A stretch of 63,332 nt of DNA, filler included, from Octopus bimaculoides (taxonomy: Eukaryota): NCBI RefSeq assembly GCF_001194135.2. It is 3 parts of 3 records of this genome, joined end to end, with 100 filler letters (N's around TTAATTAATTAA, not from the genome) between each part and the next. Parts side by side here need not be neighbours in the genome. Positions count along the whole stretch, not along the records: positions 18,493 to 42,275 come from NC_068987.1; 2 more parts are not named here. One strand, given 5' to 3'. A program made the translations under genes and the position numbers. This document shows, in pieces, positions 36,996 through 45,000 of this stretch (position 1 is the first letter of the stretch; each line of letters opens with the position of its first letter). The notes below the pieces were generated by a model. It had not been told where the DNA came from, made no database searches, and was given only the letters and a program-made list of their open reading frames with translations.

Positions 36996-39900
36996 CACTA
37001 GTGCACTTCAATATGAATGCCATAAATGACTTAGCACAAAGCATTAGGCTTTTGAGTGACTTTTATAGTAATCTCAATTGATAGAAATATTGATGGATTC
37101 TTCCGTCGAAGAACGTTCAGTTTTATTTTGCATCGTTTTTTTTTTTGTTTTTTTCTTTTGTCAAAAAACCTCCACAAAGGATTTGTTTCTAGCGATCAAA
37201 TCCTCGGGGCGCACGTTAGCTCACTTTCTCTCTCCATCAAATCGACGATGTCTGGACAGGTTTACGATGTATCACTCGTCAGGTGTCGAAGCGATCGCAG
37301 TGCATCCTGAGAAGAAGTGTTTTTCACAACCGCCCCGTCGAGGAATTTATAGCACGTTATACATATAAGGGTCTAACTTTTCAATAGAAAAACATACATA
37401 TAGACATCCCCCTACTCCACCTCCATCCCATATATAATCTAGCGCACGCACTCGGATTCCCCTACTCGATTTTTAATACCTCCACCGAAAGAATACGAAT
37501 TTCAGAAGATGCTCAGATAAGAAATTTTGTCTTTTCAACCTCGTTCATCTGTTCCTCTATTTCTGCACATATCATAAACCCCTTATTAGTTCTTTTCATC
37601 ATTCAATCTATTGCATTACCATGAAAACAATCGTTAATCGTCACATACTCATTTATTCAAGTTTATCACATCGTCGCTTATTTGTCTAATTTTGTCACTG
37701 ATTCGCCGACCGAAAATTCTAAGATTTTTCAATTCTATTTCACTATTATCGGCATTTGCTGTTTCACTAAATTATGTTAACCAAAATCCCAAAAGAATAT
37801 GTTTCTCCCTCGTGTTTGGCCCCATCTCTCTCTGTGCCTCACTCTGTCTCTCTGTTTCGTTTACCACTTGCTTCGCCAATACTTTCCGCCTCCTCCACTA
37901 CCACCACCATCCTACATAACCTAGCACACGCACTCGGATGCCCTACTCGATTTTTTATAACTCCCCCGAAAGAATACAAATACAGAAGATTCTCTCGTCT
38001 AAATCTGCTATCTCGCGGTACACCTGCCCTTCCACCCCTCCACATGTACCGGATGTTCCTCTCCGTCATCCTTAGGTGATCTCTCATGAACACTTCGCCA
38101 TCCTCACCTTCTACTTGGGGTTTATCTCCCATGTAAGGTAGTGGTCATATAGTGCATAAAAATGAGGTGTAGTGTATGCAGCTTGAAGGCTATTGTTTGT
38201 TTTATGAATCCTGCCAAATGCGAGCTTTCTTTTCAGGTACATGATGCTGCTGTCCCCCATCCCAGAGCCTCACGGGCCCACACCTCCCACACCCAAAGAG
38301 TTGGCACACTCAATGTCGGCACACTGAAAGTTAGGTCTGGTGAGATTGTTGAGATGCTTGAACGGAGATGTGTCGATATCTGCTGCCTCCGAGAAGTAAG
38401 GTGGAGAGGAGGTTCGGCTAGGTTCCTCACAAACAAAGAACACAGGTACAAGATTTTCTGGGCAGGGAACACTGACGGGGTCGGGGGCGTGGGTATACTT
38501 CTTGCGGAGAAATGGGTGGATAAGGTAATCGAGGTAGTCAGAGTATGCAACAGAATACTTAAGATTAGATTAGTGCTTTATCATGGGTTAGCAACCATTA
38601 TCTCGGGCTATACCCCTCAGCCGGGGTTACCAGATGGGCAGAAAGACCGATTTTATGACACTCTCTTGCAGACTACCTCATTGACGAATGACAGGGACCT
38701 TCTGTTTGTGGCTGGTGACTTCAATGGACATGTTGGACTACATGCAAGGGGGCTTCCCTGGCGTACATGGAGGCTATGGTTTTGGTTCCGCAATGAGGAC
38801 GGAACCAGGCTGCTGGAGTTCTGTGATGGAAATGATCTTATGGTTTGCAATACTAACTTCAACAAACCTGCCAGTCACCTACCGTTCTGGTAGACACACC
38901 AGCCAAATTGACTACATCCTCGCCAGAAAAAGTGACAAATGACTGCTTATAAATGCCAAAACATTCCCAGGCGAAGAATGTACCCCAAAACATAGTTTAG
39001 TAGTTAGCGACTTCAAGATCAGGGCTAAATGGATGCCCAGAAGACGACCAGCATGGAAGAGTAGGGTCGGAAGCCTAAAGATCCTGCGAATGGACAGAGA
39101 TTTAGAAACGTATTACTCGAAGCCTTTGACGAAATAGAAGGGATATAGCATCACACAATGTAGAAGACAACTGGAGGTTTCTACGAAACAACCTGCTGAG
39201 AGCCACCGACCAGATCTGTGGATGGTGTAAAGACTCCTCTTGACCCAAGGTAACGTGGTGGTGGAACAATGTTGTTGACAGGGCTATCAGAGAAAAGAAA
39301 CAGGCTCGGAAGGACTGGAAGAACGGTGGCAGCAGGGAATTACATAAGACTGCCAAAATGGAAGCAAGGAGACAGGTTTACTTAGCCAGAGGGGAAGCGG
39401 ATAAGAAATAAATTGCCAATGTTCTGCGCCGTGAGGACCAAAGACTTGAGGTATTTCGTGTTGCAAAACAGTGTGTGAGAGAGAATCGTGATGTCGTGGG
39501 AGAGAAATGTATTCACATGGATGATGGTACGCTTGCACTAAACGAGGCTGCAAAGAAAGAGGTTTGGAGACGCCACTACGAAAGATTGCTCAATAAAGAG
39601 AATGAATGGGAGAACGAGAGTCTACCGAATGTCGACCCAATAGAGGGACCAGCTCTCCGAATTGACAGTATCTTGGTAGATAAAGCAATTAAGAGTATGA
39701 AGACAGGGAAAGCCCCCAGCCCATCAGGAATCACTGCAGAGATGCTCAAGATATCGGGCGGTGTCGGCTATAGCCTAGTCACCCGTATTGTTAACCAGGT
39801 AATACATGAAGGAGTCATACCCAATGGCTAGTGTAGAAGCACCATAGTCAACTGCTACAAAGGTAAACGTGACGCTTTAGATACAAATAATTACAGAGGT

Positions 39901-40636
39901 ATCGAGTTGTTGGATTAGGTAATGAAGATCACGGAGAAGGTCATAGTCCAACTAATTGGGGAGAGAGTCAGTTTAGATGAGATGCAGTTTGGGTCCGTGC
40001 CTGGGAAAAGCACCACTGATGCTATATTTCTGATAAGGCAGCTGCAGGAGAAATACCTAGCCAAAGATAAACCTTTGTATCTGGCTTTCGTTGTCATGGA
40101 GAAAGCCTTTGATAGGGTCCCCGTTCCCTTATCTGGTGGCCAATGAGGAAACTAGGGATAGATGAATGGTTAGTGAGAGTTGTGAAAGCCATGTTCAAGG
40201 ACGCTGTCAGTAAGGTGAGGGTTGGCAACGAGTACAGTGAAGAATTCCATGTAGAGGTAGGGGTCCACCAAGGTTCAGTACTCAGCCCCTTCCTATTTAT
40301 CATAGTCCTCCAGAGGAATTCAAGACAGGATGCCCCTGGGAGCTCTTCTATACTGATGACCATGTTCTAATTGCTGAGTCACTATCAGAACTAGAGGAGA
40401 AGTTTCAGGTGTGGAAGCAAAGATTAGAATCGAAGGGCCTTAGAGTCAACCTGGCTAAAATCAAAGTCCTAATAAGTAGAAAGGCAAACAAACCACAAAT
40501 CCCTTCAGGTAGATGACCCTGCTCGATCTGTAGAAAAGGCGTAGGTAGAAACTATATAAGATGTACCCAGTGTAAGCTATGGACACATAAGAGGTGCAGC
40601 AATATCAAAGGAAGGCTAACTGGGAAGATAGTTTTT

Positions 40637-40869
40637 TATTTCTTTATTGTCCACATGGAGCTAAACATAGAGGGGACAAACAAGGACAGACAAAGGGATT
40701 AAGTCGATTACATCGACTTCAGTGCGTAACTGGTACTTAATTTATCGACCTCGAAAGGATGAAAGGCAAAGTCGACCTCGGCGAATTTGAACTCGGAACG
40801 TAACGGCAGACGAAATACCGCTAAGCATTTCCCTCCGACGTGTTAACGTTTCTGCCAGCTCGCCGCCTT
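40637..40869 (-). mobile_element. SINE family A inserted into the RTE LINE, with 17-bp TSD
   Basis: Full-length reverse complement of family A. TSD CTGG(G/A)AAGATAGTTTTT at 40620-40636 and 40870-40886. Confidence 0.95.
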
Positions 40870-41799
40870 CTGGAAAGATAGTTTTTGTATGTGGCAGATG
40901 CTCAGGAACAATAAACACTGAAAATGTGCAGAGAACAACTTCTGCCACATTCCAGGGAGAAAAACTACAAGTAGNNNNNNNNNNNNNNNNNNNNNNNNNN
41001 NNNNNNNNNNNNNNNNNNNNNNNNNNNNNNNNNNNNNNNNNNNNNNNNNNNNNNNNNNNNNNNNNNNNNNNNNNNNNNNNNNNNNNNNNNNNNNNNNNNN
41101 NNNNNNNNNNNNNNNNNNNNNNNNNNNNNNNNNNNNNNNNNNNNNNNNNNNNNNNNNNNNNNNNNNNNNNNNNNNNNNNNNNNNNNNNNNNNNNNNNNNN
41201 NNNNNNNNNNNNNNNNNNNNNNNNNNNNNNNNNNNNNNNNNNNNNNNNNNNNNNNNNNNNNNNNNNNNNNNNNNNNNNNNNNNNNNNNNNNNNNNNNNNN
41301 NNNNNNNNNNNNNNNNNNNNNNNNNNNNNNNNNNNNNNNNNNNNNNNNNNNNNNNNNNNNNNNNNNNNNNNNNNNNNNNNNNNNNNNNNNNNNNNNNNNN
41401 NNNNNNNNNNNNNNNNNNNNNNNNNNNNNNNNNNNNNNNNNNNNGTGAGAATAGATGAGGATAGCTGTGTGGAAAAGTGTCACACCTTCGCGGTTGAGGG
41501 AACCCGTGGAAGAGGCAGGCCCAAGAAAACCTGGGATGAGGTGGTGAAGCACGACCTCCGAACATTAGGCCTCACCGAGGCAATGACTTGTGACCGAGAC
41601 CTTTGGAAATATGCTGTGCTTGAGAAGACCCGGCAAGCCAAGTGAGACCATAACCCGTGGCCTTTGCCAGTGGTGTAACCAGCCCATTTATGCGTACCTT
41701 TCCTTCATTGGACACTAAACTCTACTTGCGAAGACCTGTTGAGGCAAGTGAAATCGAAATTGAAATCAAATTTGATGACAGCACCGCATGATTGACATC

Positions 41800-42085
41800 C
41801 GTGCCAGTGGAGCGCTAAGAACACCACCCGATCGTAATCGTTGCCAGGGCTGCTGACTGGATCCCGTGCCGATGGCATGTAAATCGCACCATTCCAGCGT
41901 GATCGTTACAAGCGTTGCCTTACTGGTACTTGTGCCAGTGGCACGTGGAAAACAACATTTGAGCGAGGTCATGCCAGTGCCGCTGGACTGGCACCTGTGC
42001 AGGTGGTACGTAAAAATACCATTTGAACGTGGCCGTTGCCAGTGCCGCTTGACTGTCCCTCGTGCCGGTGCACGTAAAAGCACTC
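41800..42085 (+). repeat. About 65-bp diverged tandem subrepeat (4 full units plus a partial) in the RTE 3' region
   Basis: Units start at 41800, 41865, 41931, 41996 and 42061, each roughly YGTGCCRGTGGCACGTAAAA..CACCATT..AGCGTG..CGTTGCCAGTGC.GCT.GACTGG. Confidence 0.85.
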
Positions 42086-45000
42086 ACTACGCTCTCGGAG
42101 TGGTTGGCGTTAGGAAGGGCATCCAACTGTAGAAACTCTGCCAGATCAGATTGAAGCCTGGTGTAGCTATCTGGATCGACAGTCCTCAGTCAAACTCTCT
42201 AACCCTTGCCAGCATGGAAGCGGACGATAAACGATGATATACATATATATATATATATATATACATATATATATANNNNNNNNNNNNNNNNNNNNNNNNN
42301 NNNNNNNNNNNNNNNNNNNTTAATTAATTAANNNNNNNNNNNNNNNNNNNNNNNNNNNNNNNNNNNNNNNNNNNNTATATATATATATATATGTATATGT
42401 ATATATATAGATTTACATGGATCACTGACTCAATGCTGCAATTACACTAAGAATACTCAGTATCTAGCGAGAAATATTTCAGTAAATTGGACCGGCCATT
42501 TTGTATGTGAAATGATTTAGCCAGAACGAGATTGTTATGGTGGCAAGATGCTGATATAGACCTTCGGCCCCTCGGCTGGTGTTTTTTGATCCTTTTGATT
42601 TAGAACTCCATAGCTCTTATTGAATCAACAATGAATACTAAAAGAGGAAGTTTTATTTCCTGTTATTACACTCGGTTACGTTTTACATCGATGTACGTCA
42701 GATGAAAGTTGAAAAATGACAAGATATATGATTTTATAAATGAATATCAACATCTAATAAAAGTAATATTTGGTAAACTACAGTATTATAACAACATAAA
42801 AAATATCAATCTTCGACAGTGCACTTATTTGTGAGATTTTTGGATGGAAAGATACAAAGGTCAACAAACTTCTTTGATATTTCTATAATTTTCTTTTTGG
42901 CTTCATGAGATAAAATCACGTTGAGACGAGAAATGGGTGAATCACGAGATTAAACAAATGCAAAATTAAAAGACAGAAAAAACCCCCCAGAAGAAATCGA
43001 AGGAAACAAATTCAGAAAATAAGAAATAAATGAAAGGAAAACCTTTTTGTATCCTTAAACGATATTTTTCATTGGAAGACTTTTCGTTATATTTGCTTTG
43101 TGATATCATTATAGTATGTAATTTATCTATAGGAAAGACAGATTAATTTCTTTTGCTTTCAATGTATGATTAATCTGATATTCTTTCTTCGTTTTCTCCT
43201 TATTATTATTTCATTTTTATTCTTTTCCCATCTCTTTTTCTGTCTGTCTGTCTCTTATTTTCTACATTATCTCCTATTTTTAATTATCATCATGTTTATC
43301 TCACTTCATTATTACATTCCTAGTGTGATTATATATATATATATNNNNNNNNNNTATATATACATGCATACTTATACATACATACTTGTATGTATGTATG
43401 AATGTATGTATGATGAATGTATGTCTTTGATCGTGAGTGTTTAAAAATTACCTCTCTATCTGATCATAATATTTCTCATCAGTCTGCAGTATTATATTTA
43501 ATATAGTTATTGTTAGTATTATTCTTATGATATTGTTGGTATAGTCATAGTTGTTGCTATAGATAATATAGTTTCACTTGTTCGTTCCCTGTTGCATCCG
43601 TTGCTTTGCTAAAAAAAGCAAAAACAACAAATAGAAGATAATAATAATAATAATAATAATCCTGCGAACTTGCCATTTCTCATTTGTGATTCCATGACTA
43701 TGGTTTGGAACGTTCTAGCAAGTGGTTCATTAAACAAAATATTTGTATCATTCTGCCTCAGGATTTTCTAAGGTTTATGAACGCGTTTCTATTTTTACAC
43801 GTTGCCCTATCAAAAAAAAAAAAGGCATTACTTTCTCTAAAAATATCACTTTCTCTAATGAACCGATGCTGAAATACCAACTCTAATGTAAAAGAAAGAA
43901 AGAAAAAATAAATAAAAGCAATTAGATAAAAAAGACAAAAATCTTCAAAAACCAAACAAAAACCCCAACACAAAACAAAAATCATACATATCTTCTGGAA
44001 AGTTCTTAAACCAACAAACTTAGATATCTTTATAACTAGTTTTATACAGATAACTTTCTGATGTAGTTCATTACATATAAGGGAAATTGGGACGTGTCCA
44101 ACTCCCCACCCTTCTATCTCTTCCTCTTTCCATCCTNNNNNNNNNNNNNNNNNNNNNNNNNNNNNNNNNNNNNNNNNNNNNNNNNNNNNNNNNNNNNNNN
44201 NNNNNNNNNNNNNNNNNNNNNNNNNNNNNNNNNNNNNNNNNNNNNNNNNNNNNNNNNNNNNNNNNNNNNNNNNNNNNNNNNNNNNNNNNNNNNNNNNNNN
44301 NNNNNNNNNNNNNNNNNNNNNNNNNNNNNNNNNNNNNNNNNNNNNNNNNNNNNNNNNNNNNNNNNNNNNNNNNNNNNNNNNNNNNNNNNNNNNNNNNNNN
44401 NNNNNNNNNNNNNNNNNNNNNNNNNNNNNNNNNNNNNNNNNNNNNNNNNNNNNNNNNNNNNNNNNNNNNNNNNNNNNNNNNNNNNNNNNNNNNNNNNNNN
44501 NNNNNNNNNNNNNNNNNNNNNNNNNNNNNNNNNNNNNNNNNNNNNNNNNNNNNNNNNNNNNNNNNNNNNNNNNNNNNNNNNNNNNNNNNNNNNNNNNNNN
44601 NNNNNNNNNNNNNNNNNNNNNNNNNNNNNNNNNATTTATATATTGTTGCACACTGCAGTCTCCTGATACCACCAACACGGCTCCAACAGTCTGCTAGCAA
44701 AATCGCAGGCAACCCAGCAACCCAACTTGCCTAGAGAAGACGAAGTAGTCAAAGAAGTCAGAAGAGTTGACAATAACGAACAAAACCGTTGAGTATAAGC
44801 AATATAAAAGAACTTTAGTTAAGAGGCGAATAAAATTTTATGAATATATTTTGGTGAGTTCTTTCATCTACCACTAAAACATGCAAAATAGACTTCTTTT
44901 GATGAGCTCTTCTTTTATTCACCCGCCAAATGATTTATTTTCTATTTTCTTCGATTGGACTCTGTTGTAACTTCCGATTCACATTAGTTCGGTAGCCGTC

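Follow-up and report, generated by a model that had tools for sequence, protein, structure and literature searches.

A predicted Pygopus-like PHD finger in the reverse transcriptase of RTE-type LINEs

The 63,332-nucleotide stretch of Octopus bimaculoides DNA analysed here (the window) contains a long interspersed nuclear element (LINE), apparently of the RTE type, with an endonuclease (EN), a reverse transcriptase (RT) and a C-terminal domain. The copy is dead. Within the palm of its RT lies a C4HC3 finger of the PHD type which, we are nearly certain, defines a clade of such elements, is selected as strongly as the core of the RT and is needed by the elements that carry it. The inserted segment is made up of a PHD finger of ~45 residues and ~20 residues of linkers and sits between RT motifs 6 (D) and 7 (E, the primer grip).

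A C4HC3 finger split by a repeat

A single reading frame of the octopus copy encodes RT block 6 (GLRVNLAKIKVL) and, downstream of it, the residues ...SGR, a TGA stop codon and the peptide PCSICRKGVGRNYIRCTQCKLWTHKRCSNIKGRLTGKIVF, at the end of which a 233-bp insert breaks the frame of the PHD finger. The frame picks up again beyond the insert as VCGRCSGTINTENVQRTTSATFQGEKLQV (40887-40973) and runs up to an assembly gap. A direct repeat of 17 nt (CTGGGAAGATAGTTTTT and CTGGAAAGATAGTTTTT, identical at 16 of the 17 positions) bounds the insert. With the insert removed, the joined peptide displays the spacing C-x2-C-x10-C-x2-C-x4-H-x2-C-x14-C-x2-C with a phenylalanine two residues ahead of the last CxxC, which on recounting is exactly the arrangement reported in a first-pass annotation made from the sequence alone. 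The joined peptide matches the Pfam PHD family (PF00628) with E=2.2e-6 and 28.0 bits, the gathering score being 24. Two other readings of the zinc motif were tried and rejected: a C1 domain (Pfam C1_1 and C1_2 both below their thresholds) and a RING finger (zf-RING_16 below threshold, with the ligands in the order C4HC3 and not C3HC4).

The same annotation placed the finger after RT block 6 and ahead of a block 7 hidden by the gap. This placement holds, because homologues of the octopus sequence, after the residues ...GEKLxV, run on as VDSFRYLGD, which is block 7.

The LINE copy itself carries several frameshifts and in-frame stops, and its RT homology is split across three frames. Its catalytic motifs are damaged, reading FVVMEKAFD where relatives have FVDLEKAFD and YTDD where they have YADD, and the otherwise conserved N-S-I has become N-Y-I. 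The TGA ahead of the first cysteine of the finger occupies a position at which relatives carry an aromatic residue (tryptophan in octopus copies). The nearest proteins to the copy are fragments of O. bimaculoides gene models (80-82% identity), and no second such LINE is seen in the piece of the window in which it lies.

A shared finger in a fixed position

The same arrangement of the finger is found in 63 homologues identified in a first round of searching, including copies only 42-57% identical that nevertheless keep every ligand. A search of 1.84 billion cluster representatives with a profile that spans RT block 6, the PHD finger and block 7 returned 3,808 matches at E<=1e-3, of which 1,205 reach E<=1e-10 and 30 reach E<=1e-30. 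Several are full-length open reading frames (ORFs) in which the match covers approximately residues 750-870 of ~1,040. A second search, with six full-length proteins as queries, identified ~75 intact finger-bearing ORFs of 907-1,126 amino acids and also returned related ORFs that lack the finger.

Comparison of the two groups defines the insertion clearly. The distance from YADD to YLG is 124-135 amino acids where the finger is present and 64-72 amino acids in 14 finger-less RTEs, and in the alignment the finger columns form a clean gap of ~65 columns in the finger-less sequences. The Pfam RVT_1 match ends at profile position 193 of 205, just ahead of the finger, in finger-bearing ORFs, and reaches position 204 of 205 in a finger-less protein from Necator (P0298). 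When individual finger-bearing ORFs are scored against Pfam PHD, P0217 (27.1 bits), P0223 (26.8) and P0199 (24.8) lie above the gathering score and P0183 (20.0) lies below it. The eight ligands and a tryptophan are invariant in 51 diverse fingers, and the spacing is 10/4/13-15 in a larger set of 221.

A neighbour-joining tree was built from 619 columns of the RT and thumb, leaving out those of the finger. In 30 of 30 bootstraps the 75 finger-bearing ORFs form one clade, separate from the 14 finger-less RTEs, a pattern that fits a single acquisition of the finger. That the finger would prove to be the feature of a lineage, as the first-pass annotation had suggested, is borne out by this clade, by the intact ORFs and by the 1,205 stronger profile matches.

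The intact relatives encode an N-terminal apurinic-type endonuclease (Exo_endo_phos) and an RT (RVT_1) in a single ORF, with no ORF1. They are found on contigs of 3.2-3.9 kb, each with one full-length ORF that begins 142-464 nt in from the end; on two of these contigs there are also short or truncated extra gene calls. The contigs are whole elements assembled from metagenomes, several of them from Tara Oceans. Three loci (L001, L007 and L008), on Tara Oceans contigs of 3.3-3.9 kb (PRJEB4352), are whole intact elements with the finger, which suggests high-copy, recently active families in marine planktonic animals.

Records of finger-bearing sequences that carry an organism name are confined to O. 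bimaculoides and a single entry for the filarial nematode Acanthocheilonema viteae (P0199, VBB35221.1), an RTE ORF with RVT_1 and PHD domains on a 2-kb contig, the origin of which may be the worm or a contaminant. The Necator americanus RTEs in the search results lack the finger. A 92-amino acid fragment of RT and finger (P0035) appears in UniRef under the name of a hypothetical protein from 'Salmonella sp. s55962', an entry that has almost certainly been mislabelled or derives from a contaminant. UniRef also names some of the O. bimaculoides fragments automatically as 'Zinc finger PHD-type domain-containing protein'.

Among finger-less sequences, the closest relatives are LINEs from nematodes and plants that follow the same plan, and octopus elements of this kind have been placed in RTE (PMC9115989, PMC10294476). 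The host element is accordingly best described as a probable RTE-type LINE, an assignment that draws on the plan of the element, its nearest relatives and the literature.

Selection on the finger

The first-pass annotation had also proposed that the ratio of non-synonymous to synonymous substitution rates (dN/dS) be examined. We calculated this by the Nei-Gojobori method from the DNA of six intact elements, leaving out two more distant pairs in which synonymous sites are saturated. In the four unsaturated pairs dN/dS for the finger is 0.018, 0.059, 0.050 and 0.092, as low as that for the RT core (0.067-0.079); the whole ORF gives 0.093-0.122, and the short linkers flanking the finger give higher, noisy values. 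Conservation of alignment columns tells a similar story, with a score of 0.73 for the finger core, 0.72-0.83 for the RT motifs and 0.25 for the linker after the finger. Since purifying selection on the finger is as strong as that on the RT core, active elements need the finger.

These results dispose of the weakest rival explanation, that the finger is an artefact or private event—a C4HC3 pattern arising by chance, an exon or foreign fragment captured in one copy, or a product of joining across the insert—which we consider vanishingly improbable even though the octopus copy is heavily decayed and can be read only by removing the insert and tolerating a stop codon: the finger is found uninterrupted and in the same place in hundreds of relatives, including the ~75 intact ORFs, the junction in the octopus copy is set by the 17-nt target-site duplication, and the profile search, the clade support and the strength of selection all refute it.

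Predicted fold

An AlphaFold2 model of the finger alone was built from an O. bimaculoides segment 82% identical to the window peptide (P0002) with 51 aligned sequences. The core is predicted with a local confidence score (pLDDT) of 82-88 and includes a short two-stranded sheet, with strands at 26-28 and 35-37. When this model is compared with the PDB using Foldseek, the top 50 matches are PHD fingers, with root mean square deviations (rmsd) of 2.0-2.8 A, the exceptions being a FYVE domain and a multi-protein complex. They include the fingers of ARID5, TAF3 (rmsd 2.0 A over 48 columns), BAZ2A/B, BHC80, MLL and Pygo2. A PHD fold for the segment, as claimed in the first-pass annotation, is supported by the Pfam score, the ligand pattern, the predicted structure and the Foldseek matches, and we infer that the finger binds zinc. 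None of the outcomes that the annotation had named as counting against its proposal, namely a consensus lacking the ligands, an insertion private to this copy or assignment to another fold, was found.

We also modelled the full-length protein P0217, the closest intact relative of the octopus copy (44-60% identity). The model has a mean pLDDT of 89.8 and a predicted template modelling score (pTM) of 0.84, with the finger (residues 795-838) at 91-95, and in it the finger lies between the strand of motif 6 (776-780) and the beta-strands that bear YLG (852-874). Its top structural match is the human L1 ORF2 protein (ORF2p; 8uw3, E=2.4e-37). By HMMER alignment, the insertion point on L1 ORF2p is flanked by KINVQKSQAF on one side and the IKYLG primer grip on the other, at around residues 745-765.

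Resemblance to Pygopus PHD fingers

When the finger profile is searched against all PDB sequences, the PHD fingers of Pygopus proteins are returned first (4up0, 2vpe and 2dx8; E=2.6e-8 to 5e-8). The two share the signature YPCGxC ... V ... ILC ... CxKWxHxxC(S/T)G. Precomputed matches to the Pfam family PHD_Pygo (PF27108) exist for many of the fingers; in the three elements for which they are marked, they are labelled 'weak' or 'faint'.

The PHD finger of Pygopus reads histone H3 di- or trimethylated at lysine 4 (H3K4me2/3). Residues within it with published roles include W353, which divides the pockets for A1 and K4me, I344 in the T3 channel, the PHD signature residue W377 and D339 on the lip of the K4 pocket (PMC2927781), whilst in the Drosophila protein Y748 forms the lid of the K4 pocket and V757 lines it (PMC3851687). 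We located the equivalent positions by HMMER alignment to Pygo1/2 and computed residue frequencies and charge over the 221 RTE fingers. The lid tyrosine of YPC (Y748) is aromatic (tyrosine, phenylalanine or tryptophan) in 87% of them, the valine of EVND (V757) is valine in 97%, I344 is isoleucine or valine in 94%, the divider W353 is tryptophan in 96% and W377 is phenylalanine or tyrosine in 97%. The divider tryptophan and second aromatic residue expected of PHD fingers that read H3K4me are each present in most of the fingers. The aspartate of EVND on the lip of the K4 pocket (D339/D759) is absent.

The RTE finger is Pygopus-like but probably lies outside the Pygopus family. The known Pygopus fingers (those of PYGO1/2 and Drosophila Pygo) belong to a Wnt co-activator, whereas the RTE finger forms part of a reverse transcriptase. 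It lacks the EVND 'Pygo loop' and the acidic K4-pocket lip of that loop, as defined in earlier work (PMC2927781, PMC3851687), and its net charge averages +5.6 as against -6 in Pygopus.

What might the finger do?

We favour, tentatively and at somewhat less than even confidence, a role for the finger in docking onto chromatin, on the strength of the conserved Pygopus-type pocket; the first-pass annotation had already raised chromatin reading and the steering of integration as possibilities, and both histone binding and any effect on integration are inferred. In outline, the pocket (aromatic lid, lining valine, T3-channel isoleucine and divider tryptophan) would grip the tail of H3 or some other methyl-lysine ligand, and the finger would dock the primer-grip side of the RT onto the nucleosome at the nicked target, leaving the basic remainder of its surface to face DNA or RNA. 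Since the finger is attached directly ahead of the primer grip, such docking might steady the RT on the nicked target. Its effect would be to make target-primed reverse transcription more stable in a chromatin setting, and it could also bias the choice of landing sites. The most specific form of this proposal, that a branch of RTE LINEs has built a Pygopus-type reader of methyl-lysine or the H3 tail into the palm of its RT, next to the primer grip, and so physically coupled target-primed reverse transcription to a histone mark carried by the nucleosome under attack, is one that we regard as doubtful.

Several observations weigh against chromatin docking. The EVND loop of Pygopus is replaced in the RTE fingers by G-V-G-x-N, two residues shorter and with a mean of ~0.1 acidic residues, and the lip position is occupied by serine, valine, arginine or alanine. 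The finger core is basic in 99.5% of the 221 fingers (range 0 to +12), and the copy in the window has a net charge of +11, set against -6 for the two human Pygopus cores. So basic a finger is a poor electrostatic match for the H3 tail, itself basic, and is typical of nucleic-acid binders. The conserved tryptophan and aromatic residues, moreover, could equally stack on bases or be structural.

These same properties make it possible, and in our view a matter to be taken seriously, that the finger is instead a nucleic-acid clamp: a basic zinc module next to the primer grip, with the primer strand of the target DNA, the upstream duplex or the RNA template as its ligand and no reading of histones. 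Such a clamp would perhaps take over the function of the cysteine-rich C-terminal domains found in other LINE ORF2 proteins but missing from RTE elements. The near-universal positive charge of the core, the conservation of H-K-R/K-K-C and other R/K-rich positions, the loss of the acidic lip and the insertion point directly ahead of motif 7 would all suit this role, and a Pfam scan of four full-length ORFs, finger-bearing proteins and a finger-less relative among them, detects no further zinc-finger domain. What speaks for chromatin docking over a clamp is that, the ligands apart, the most strongly conserved residues are those that line the H3 pocket in Pygopus, and that the nearest relatives of the finger in both sequence and fold are all readers of histone tails. 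Binding of DNA or RNA by single PHD fingers is, in addition, uncommon.

Less probable again, and in our judgement unlikely, is a structural or docking role without contact to chromatin or nucleic acid, in which the finger supports the region where the palm meets the C-terminal half of the RT, or recruits a host protein or another copy of the ORF product. The finger is predicted with a pLDDT of 91-95 in the full-length model as against 71 when modelled alone, as might be expected were it packed on the enzyme, though the full-length alignment is also the deeper of the two. PHD fingers can bind partners other than histones, and the rear face of the Pygopus finger binds the HD1 of BCL9 (PMC2927781). 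Against this, sister RTEs work without the insert, so the RT needs no brace at that point, and the invariant tryptophan occupies a position that is solvent-exposed in Pygopus, suggesting a role in contacting a ligand rather than in the core.

Comparison with other retroelements

PHD fingers are not new to LINEs. Those of CR1/L2-type elements were reportedly described by Kapitonov and Jurka in 2003. In these elements the finger is found in ORF1 or, occasionally, at the start of ORF2; its presence and position vary, and no functional study of it has been made (PMC4120745). The CR1/L2 fingers resemble the RTE finger in belonging to a non-LTR (long terminal repeat) retrotransposon and in being thought to target chromatin. 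They differ in lying in a separate ORF1 or N-terminal to the enzyme, in elements of the Jockey/CR1/L2 superfamily, whereas the RTE finger is inside the palm of the RT of a single-ORF element, at a fixed site, and defines a clade.

The closest comparison is with RTEs that lack the finger, such as the N. americanus proteins P0298 and P0299 and plant RTE-like LINEs; BovB is presumably a further example. These have the same single-ORF plan, with EN, RT and a tail of the form RLRW.GH / GRPR..W, share 33-40% identity with the finger-bearing P0183 along the entire protein and form the outgroup to the finger clade. Human L1 ORF2p (8uw3, 8sxt and 9hdo), which is also the best match in sequence (E=5.5e-77), is likewise a target-primed reverse transcriptase with an N-terminal apurinic-type endonuclease, but has a stretch of only ~20 residues separating motif D from the primer grip. 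The cysteine-rich motif of L1 ORF2p is located at its C-terminus.

A parallel of another kind is offered by the chromoviruses, LTR retrotransposons in which a chromodomain on the integrase acts as a reader of histone marks carried on a retroelement enzyme and directs integration. The chromodomain is, however, a different reader fold, is carried on an integrase as a C-terminal rather than an internal fusion, and belongs to a different class of element.

The accounts of RTEs consulted otherwise describe endonuclease and RT only. The octopus element RTE-2_OV has been reported to encode a 'C2H2 zinc finger', noted as relatively rare in RTE (PMC9115989), which may or may not be the PHD finger considered here. 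A search of the full-text literature, which did not extend to Repbase Reports or most subscription journals, turned up no account of an RTE reverse transcriptase with a PHD finger within it. The domain is already annotated automatically in databases, and specialists may well have noticed it and left it unpublished. What appears to be new is a LINE PHD finger in a new place, in a new clade and of a distinct, Pygopus-like subtype.

The choice of target by LINEs is usually ascribed to the endonuclease, to replication or to DNA structure. A fixed, strongly selected finger of the reader type in the polymerase of a single-protein LINE, with many intact copies and finger-less sisters to serve as natural controls, makes it possible to ask directly whether a LINE can sense the state of chromatin. 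Were chromatin docking correct, the finger would be a LINE counterpart of the chromodomain that guides chromovirus integration and the first histone reader inside the catalytic domain of an RT. The finger also marks a point at which a LINE RT can accommodate an entire extra domain, which is of interest for the engineering of insertion tools based on retrotransposons. RTE elements make up a large share of cephalopod genomes and have been reported to be expressed in the octopus brain (PMC9115989).

The octopus copy and its surroundings

The features of the copy are collected in Table 1. Homology of its EN to intact relatives begins at ~38234.

Table 1. Features of the octopus LINE and of the repeat within it (positions in the window)
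Feature	Position	Strand	Basis
Apurinic-type endonuclease (EN), longest open stretch	38162..38893	+	Pfam Exo_endo_phos E=5.8e-5; tblastn P0217 residues 25-244, 44% identity
Linker and RT fingers/palm, in three frames with stops	39142..40516	+	Pfam RVT_1 E=9.7e-13; tblastn P0217/P0216, 44-60% identity in pieces
RT motif FVVMEKAFDRVP	40087-40122	+	Frame translation
RT motif VGVHQGSVLSPFLF	40257-40298	+	Frame translation
YTDD	40349-40360	+	Frame translation
RT block 6 (motif D) GLRVNLAKIKVL, last RT motif ahead of the finger	40436..40471	+	Aligns with KGLRVN..KTK of all relatives
In-frame TGA, two codons ahead of the first Cys	40514..40516	+	Frame translation
PHD finger part 1, ligands C1-C5 and His: CSIC 40520-40531, CTQC 40562-40573, HKRC 40586-40597	40517..40636	+	Translation, Pfam
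Left copy of target-site duplication	40620..40636	.	Repeat search
SINE-like repeat, 233 bp, antisense to the LINE, A/T-rich tail at left end	40637..40869	-	Flanking duplication and five other copies
Right copy of target-site duplication, 16/17 identical	40870..40886	.	Repeat search
PHD finger part 2 (last ligand pair CGRC 40890-40901) and variable linker toward block 7	40887..40974	+	Translation
Assembly gap, 470 N; hides block 7 (YLG), thumb and most of the C-terminal domain, ~130 amino acids	40975..41444	.	Comparison with P0217
C-terminal tail of ORF, RTE-typical GRGRPKKTW (41508-41534), stop codon ending 41645	41445..41645	+	Aligns with P0217 993-1042
3' untranslated region, 65-nt tandem repeat x2.5 (41922-42079), (AT)n 42237-42275 at edge of piece	41646..42275	+	Tandem Repeats Finder, self-matches

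The insert that splits the finger is an interspersed repeat resembling a short interspersed nuclear element (SINE), given its target-site duplication and the further copies of it present in the same piece. There are five such copies or fragments (30956-31181, 28116-28278, 36269-36408, 25195-25333 and 25459-25575), with 77-89% identity, all on the opposite strand to the copy within the finger. ARAGORN identified no tRNA in the insert, and a search of the region against Rfam gave only a sub-threshold match to osmY (17 bits against a threshold of 46.9); since this typing gave nothing, the status of the insert as a repeat rests on the other copies.

Downstream of the assembly gap, the motif GRGRPKKTW resembles an AT-hook, scoring 16.7 bits against Pfam AT_hook, just below the threshold of 17.4. 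The G-R-P core of the motif shows little or no variation across 89 RTE relatives, whether they carry the finger or lack it, and may represent a contact with the minor groove of DNA common to the whole RTE group. The 65-nt tandem repeat in the 3' untranslated region shows 78% matches between copies. Elsewhere in the window, a stretch at 32393-32671 (+ strand) encodes another piece of C-terminal tail from a LINE (...RLRWTGHLIRM...GRRLRQKPRLRFKDCV...), weakly similar (28% identity) to residues 903-990 of P0216.

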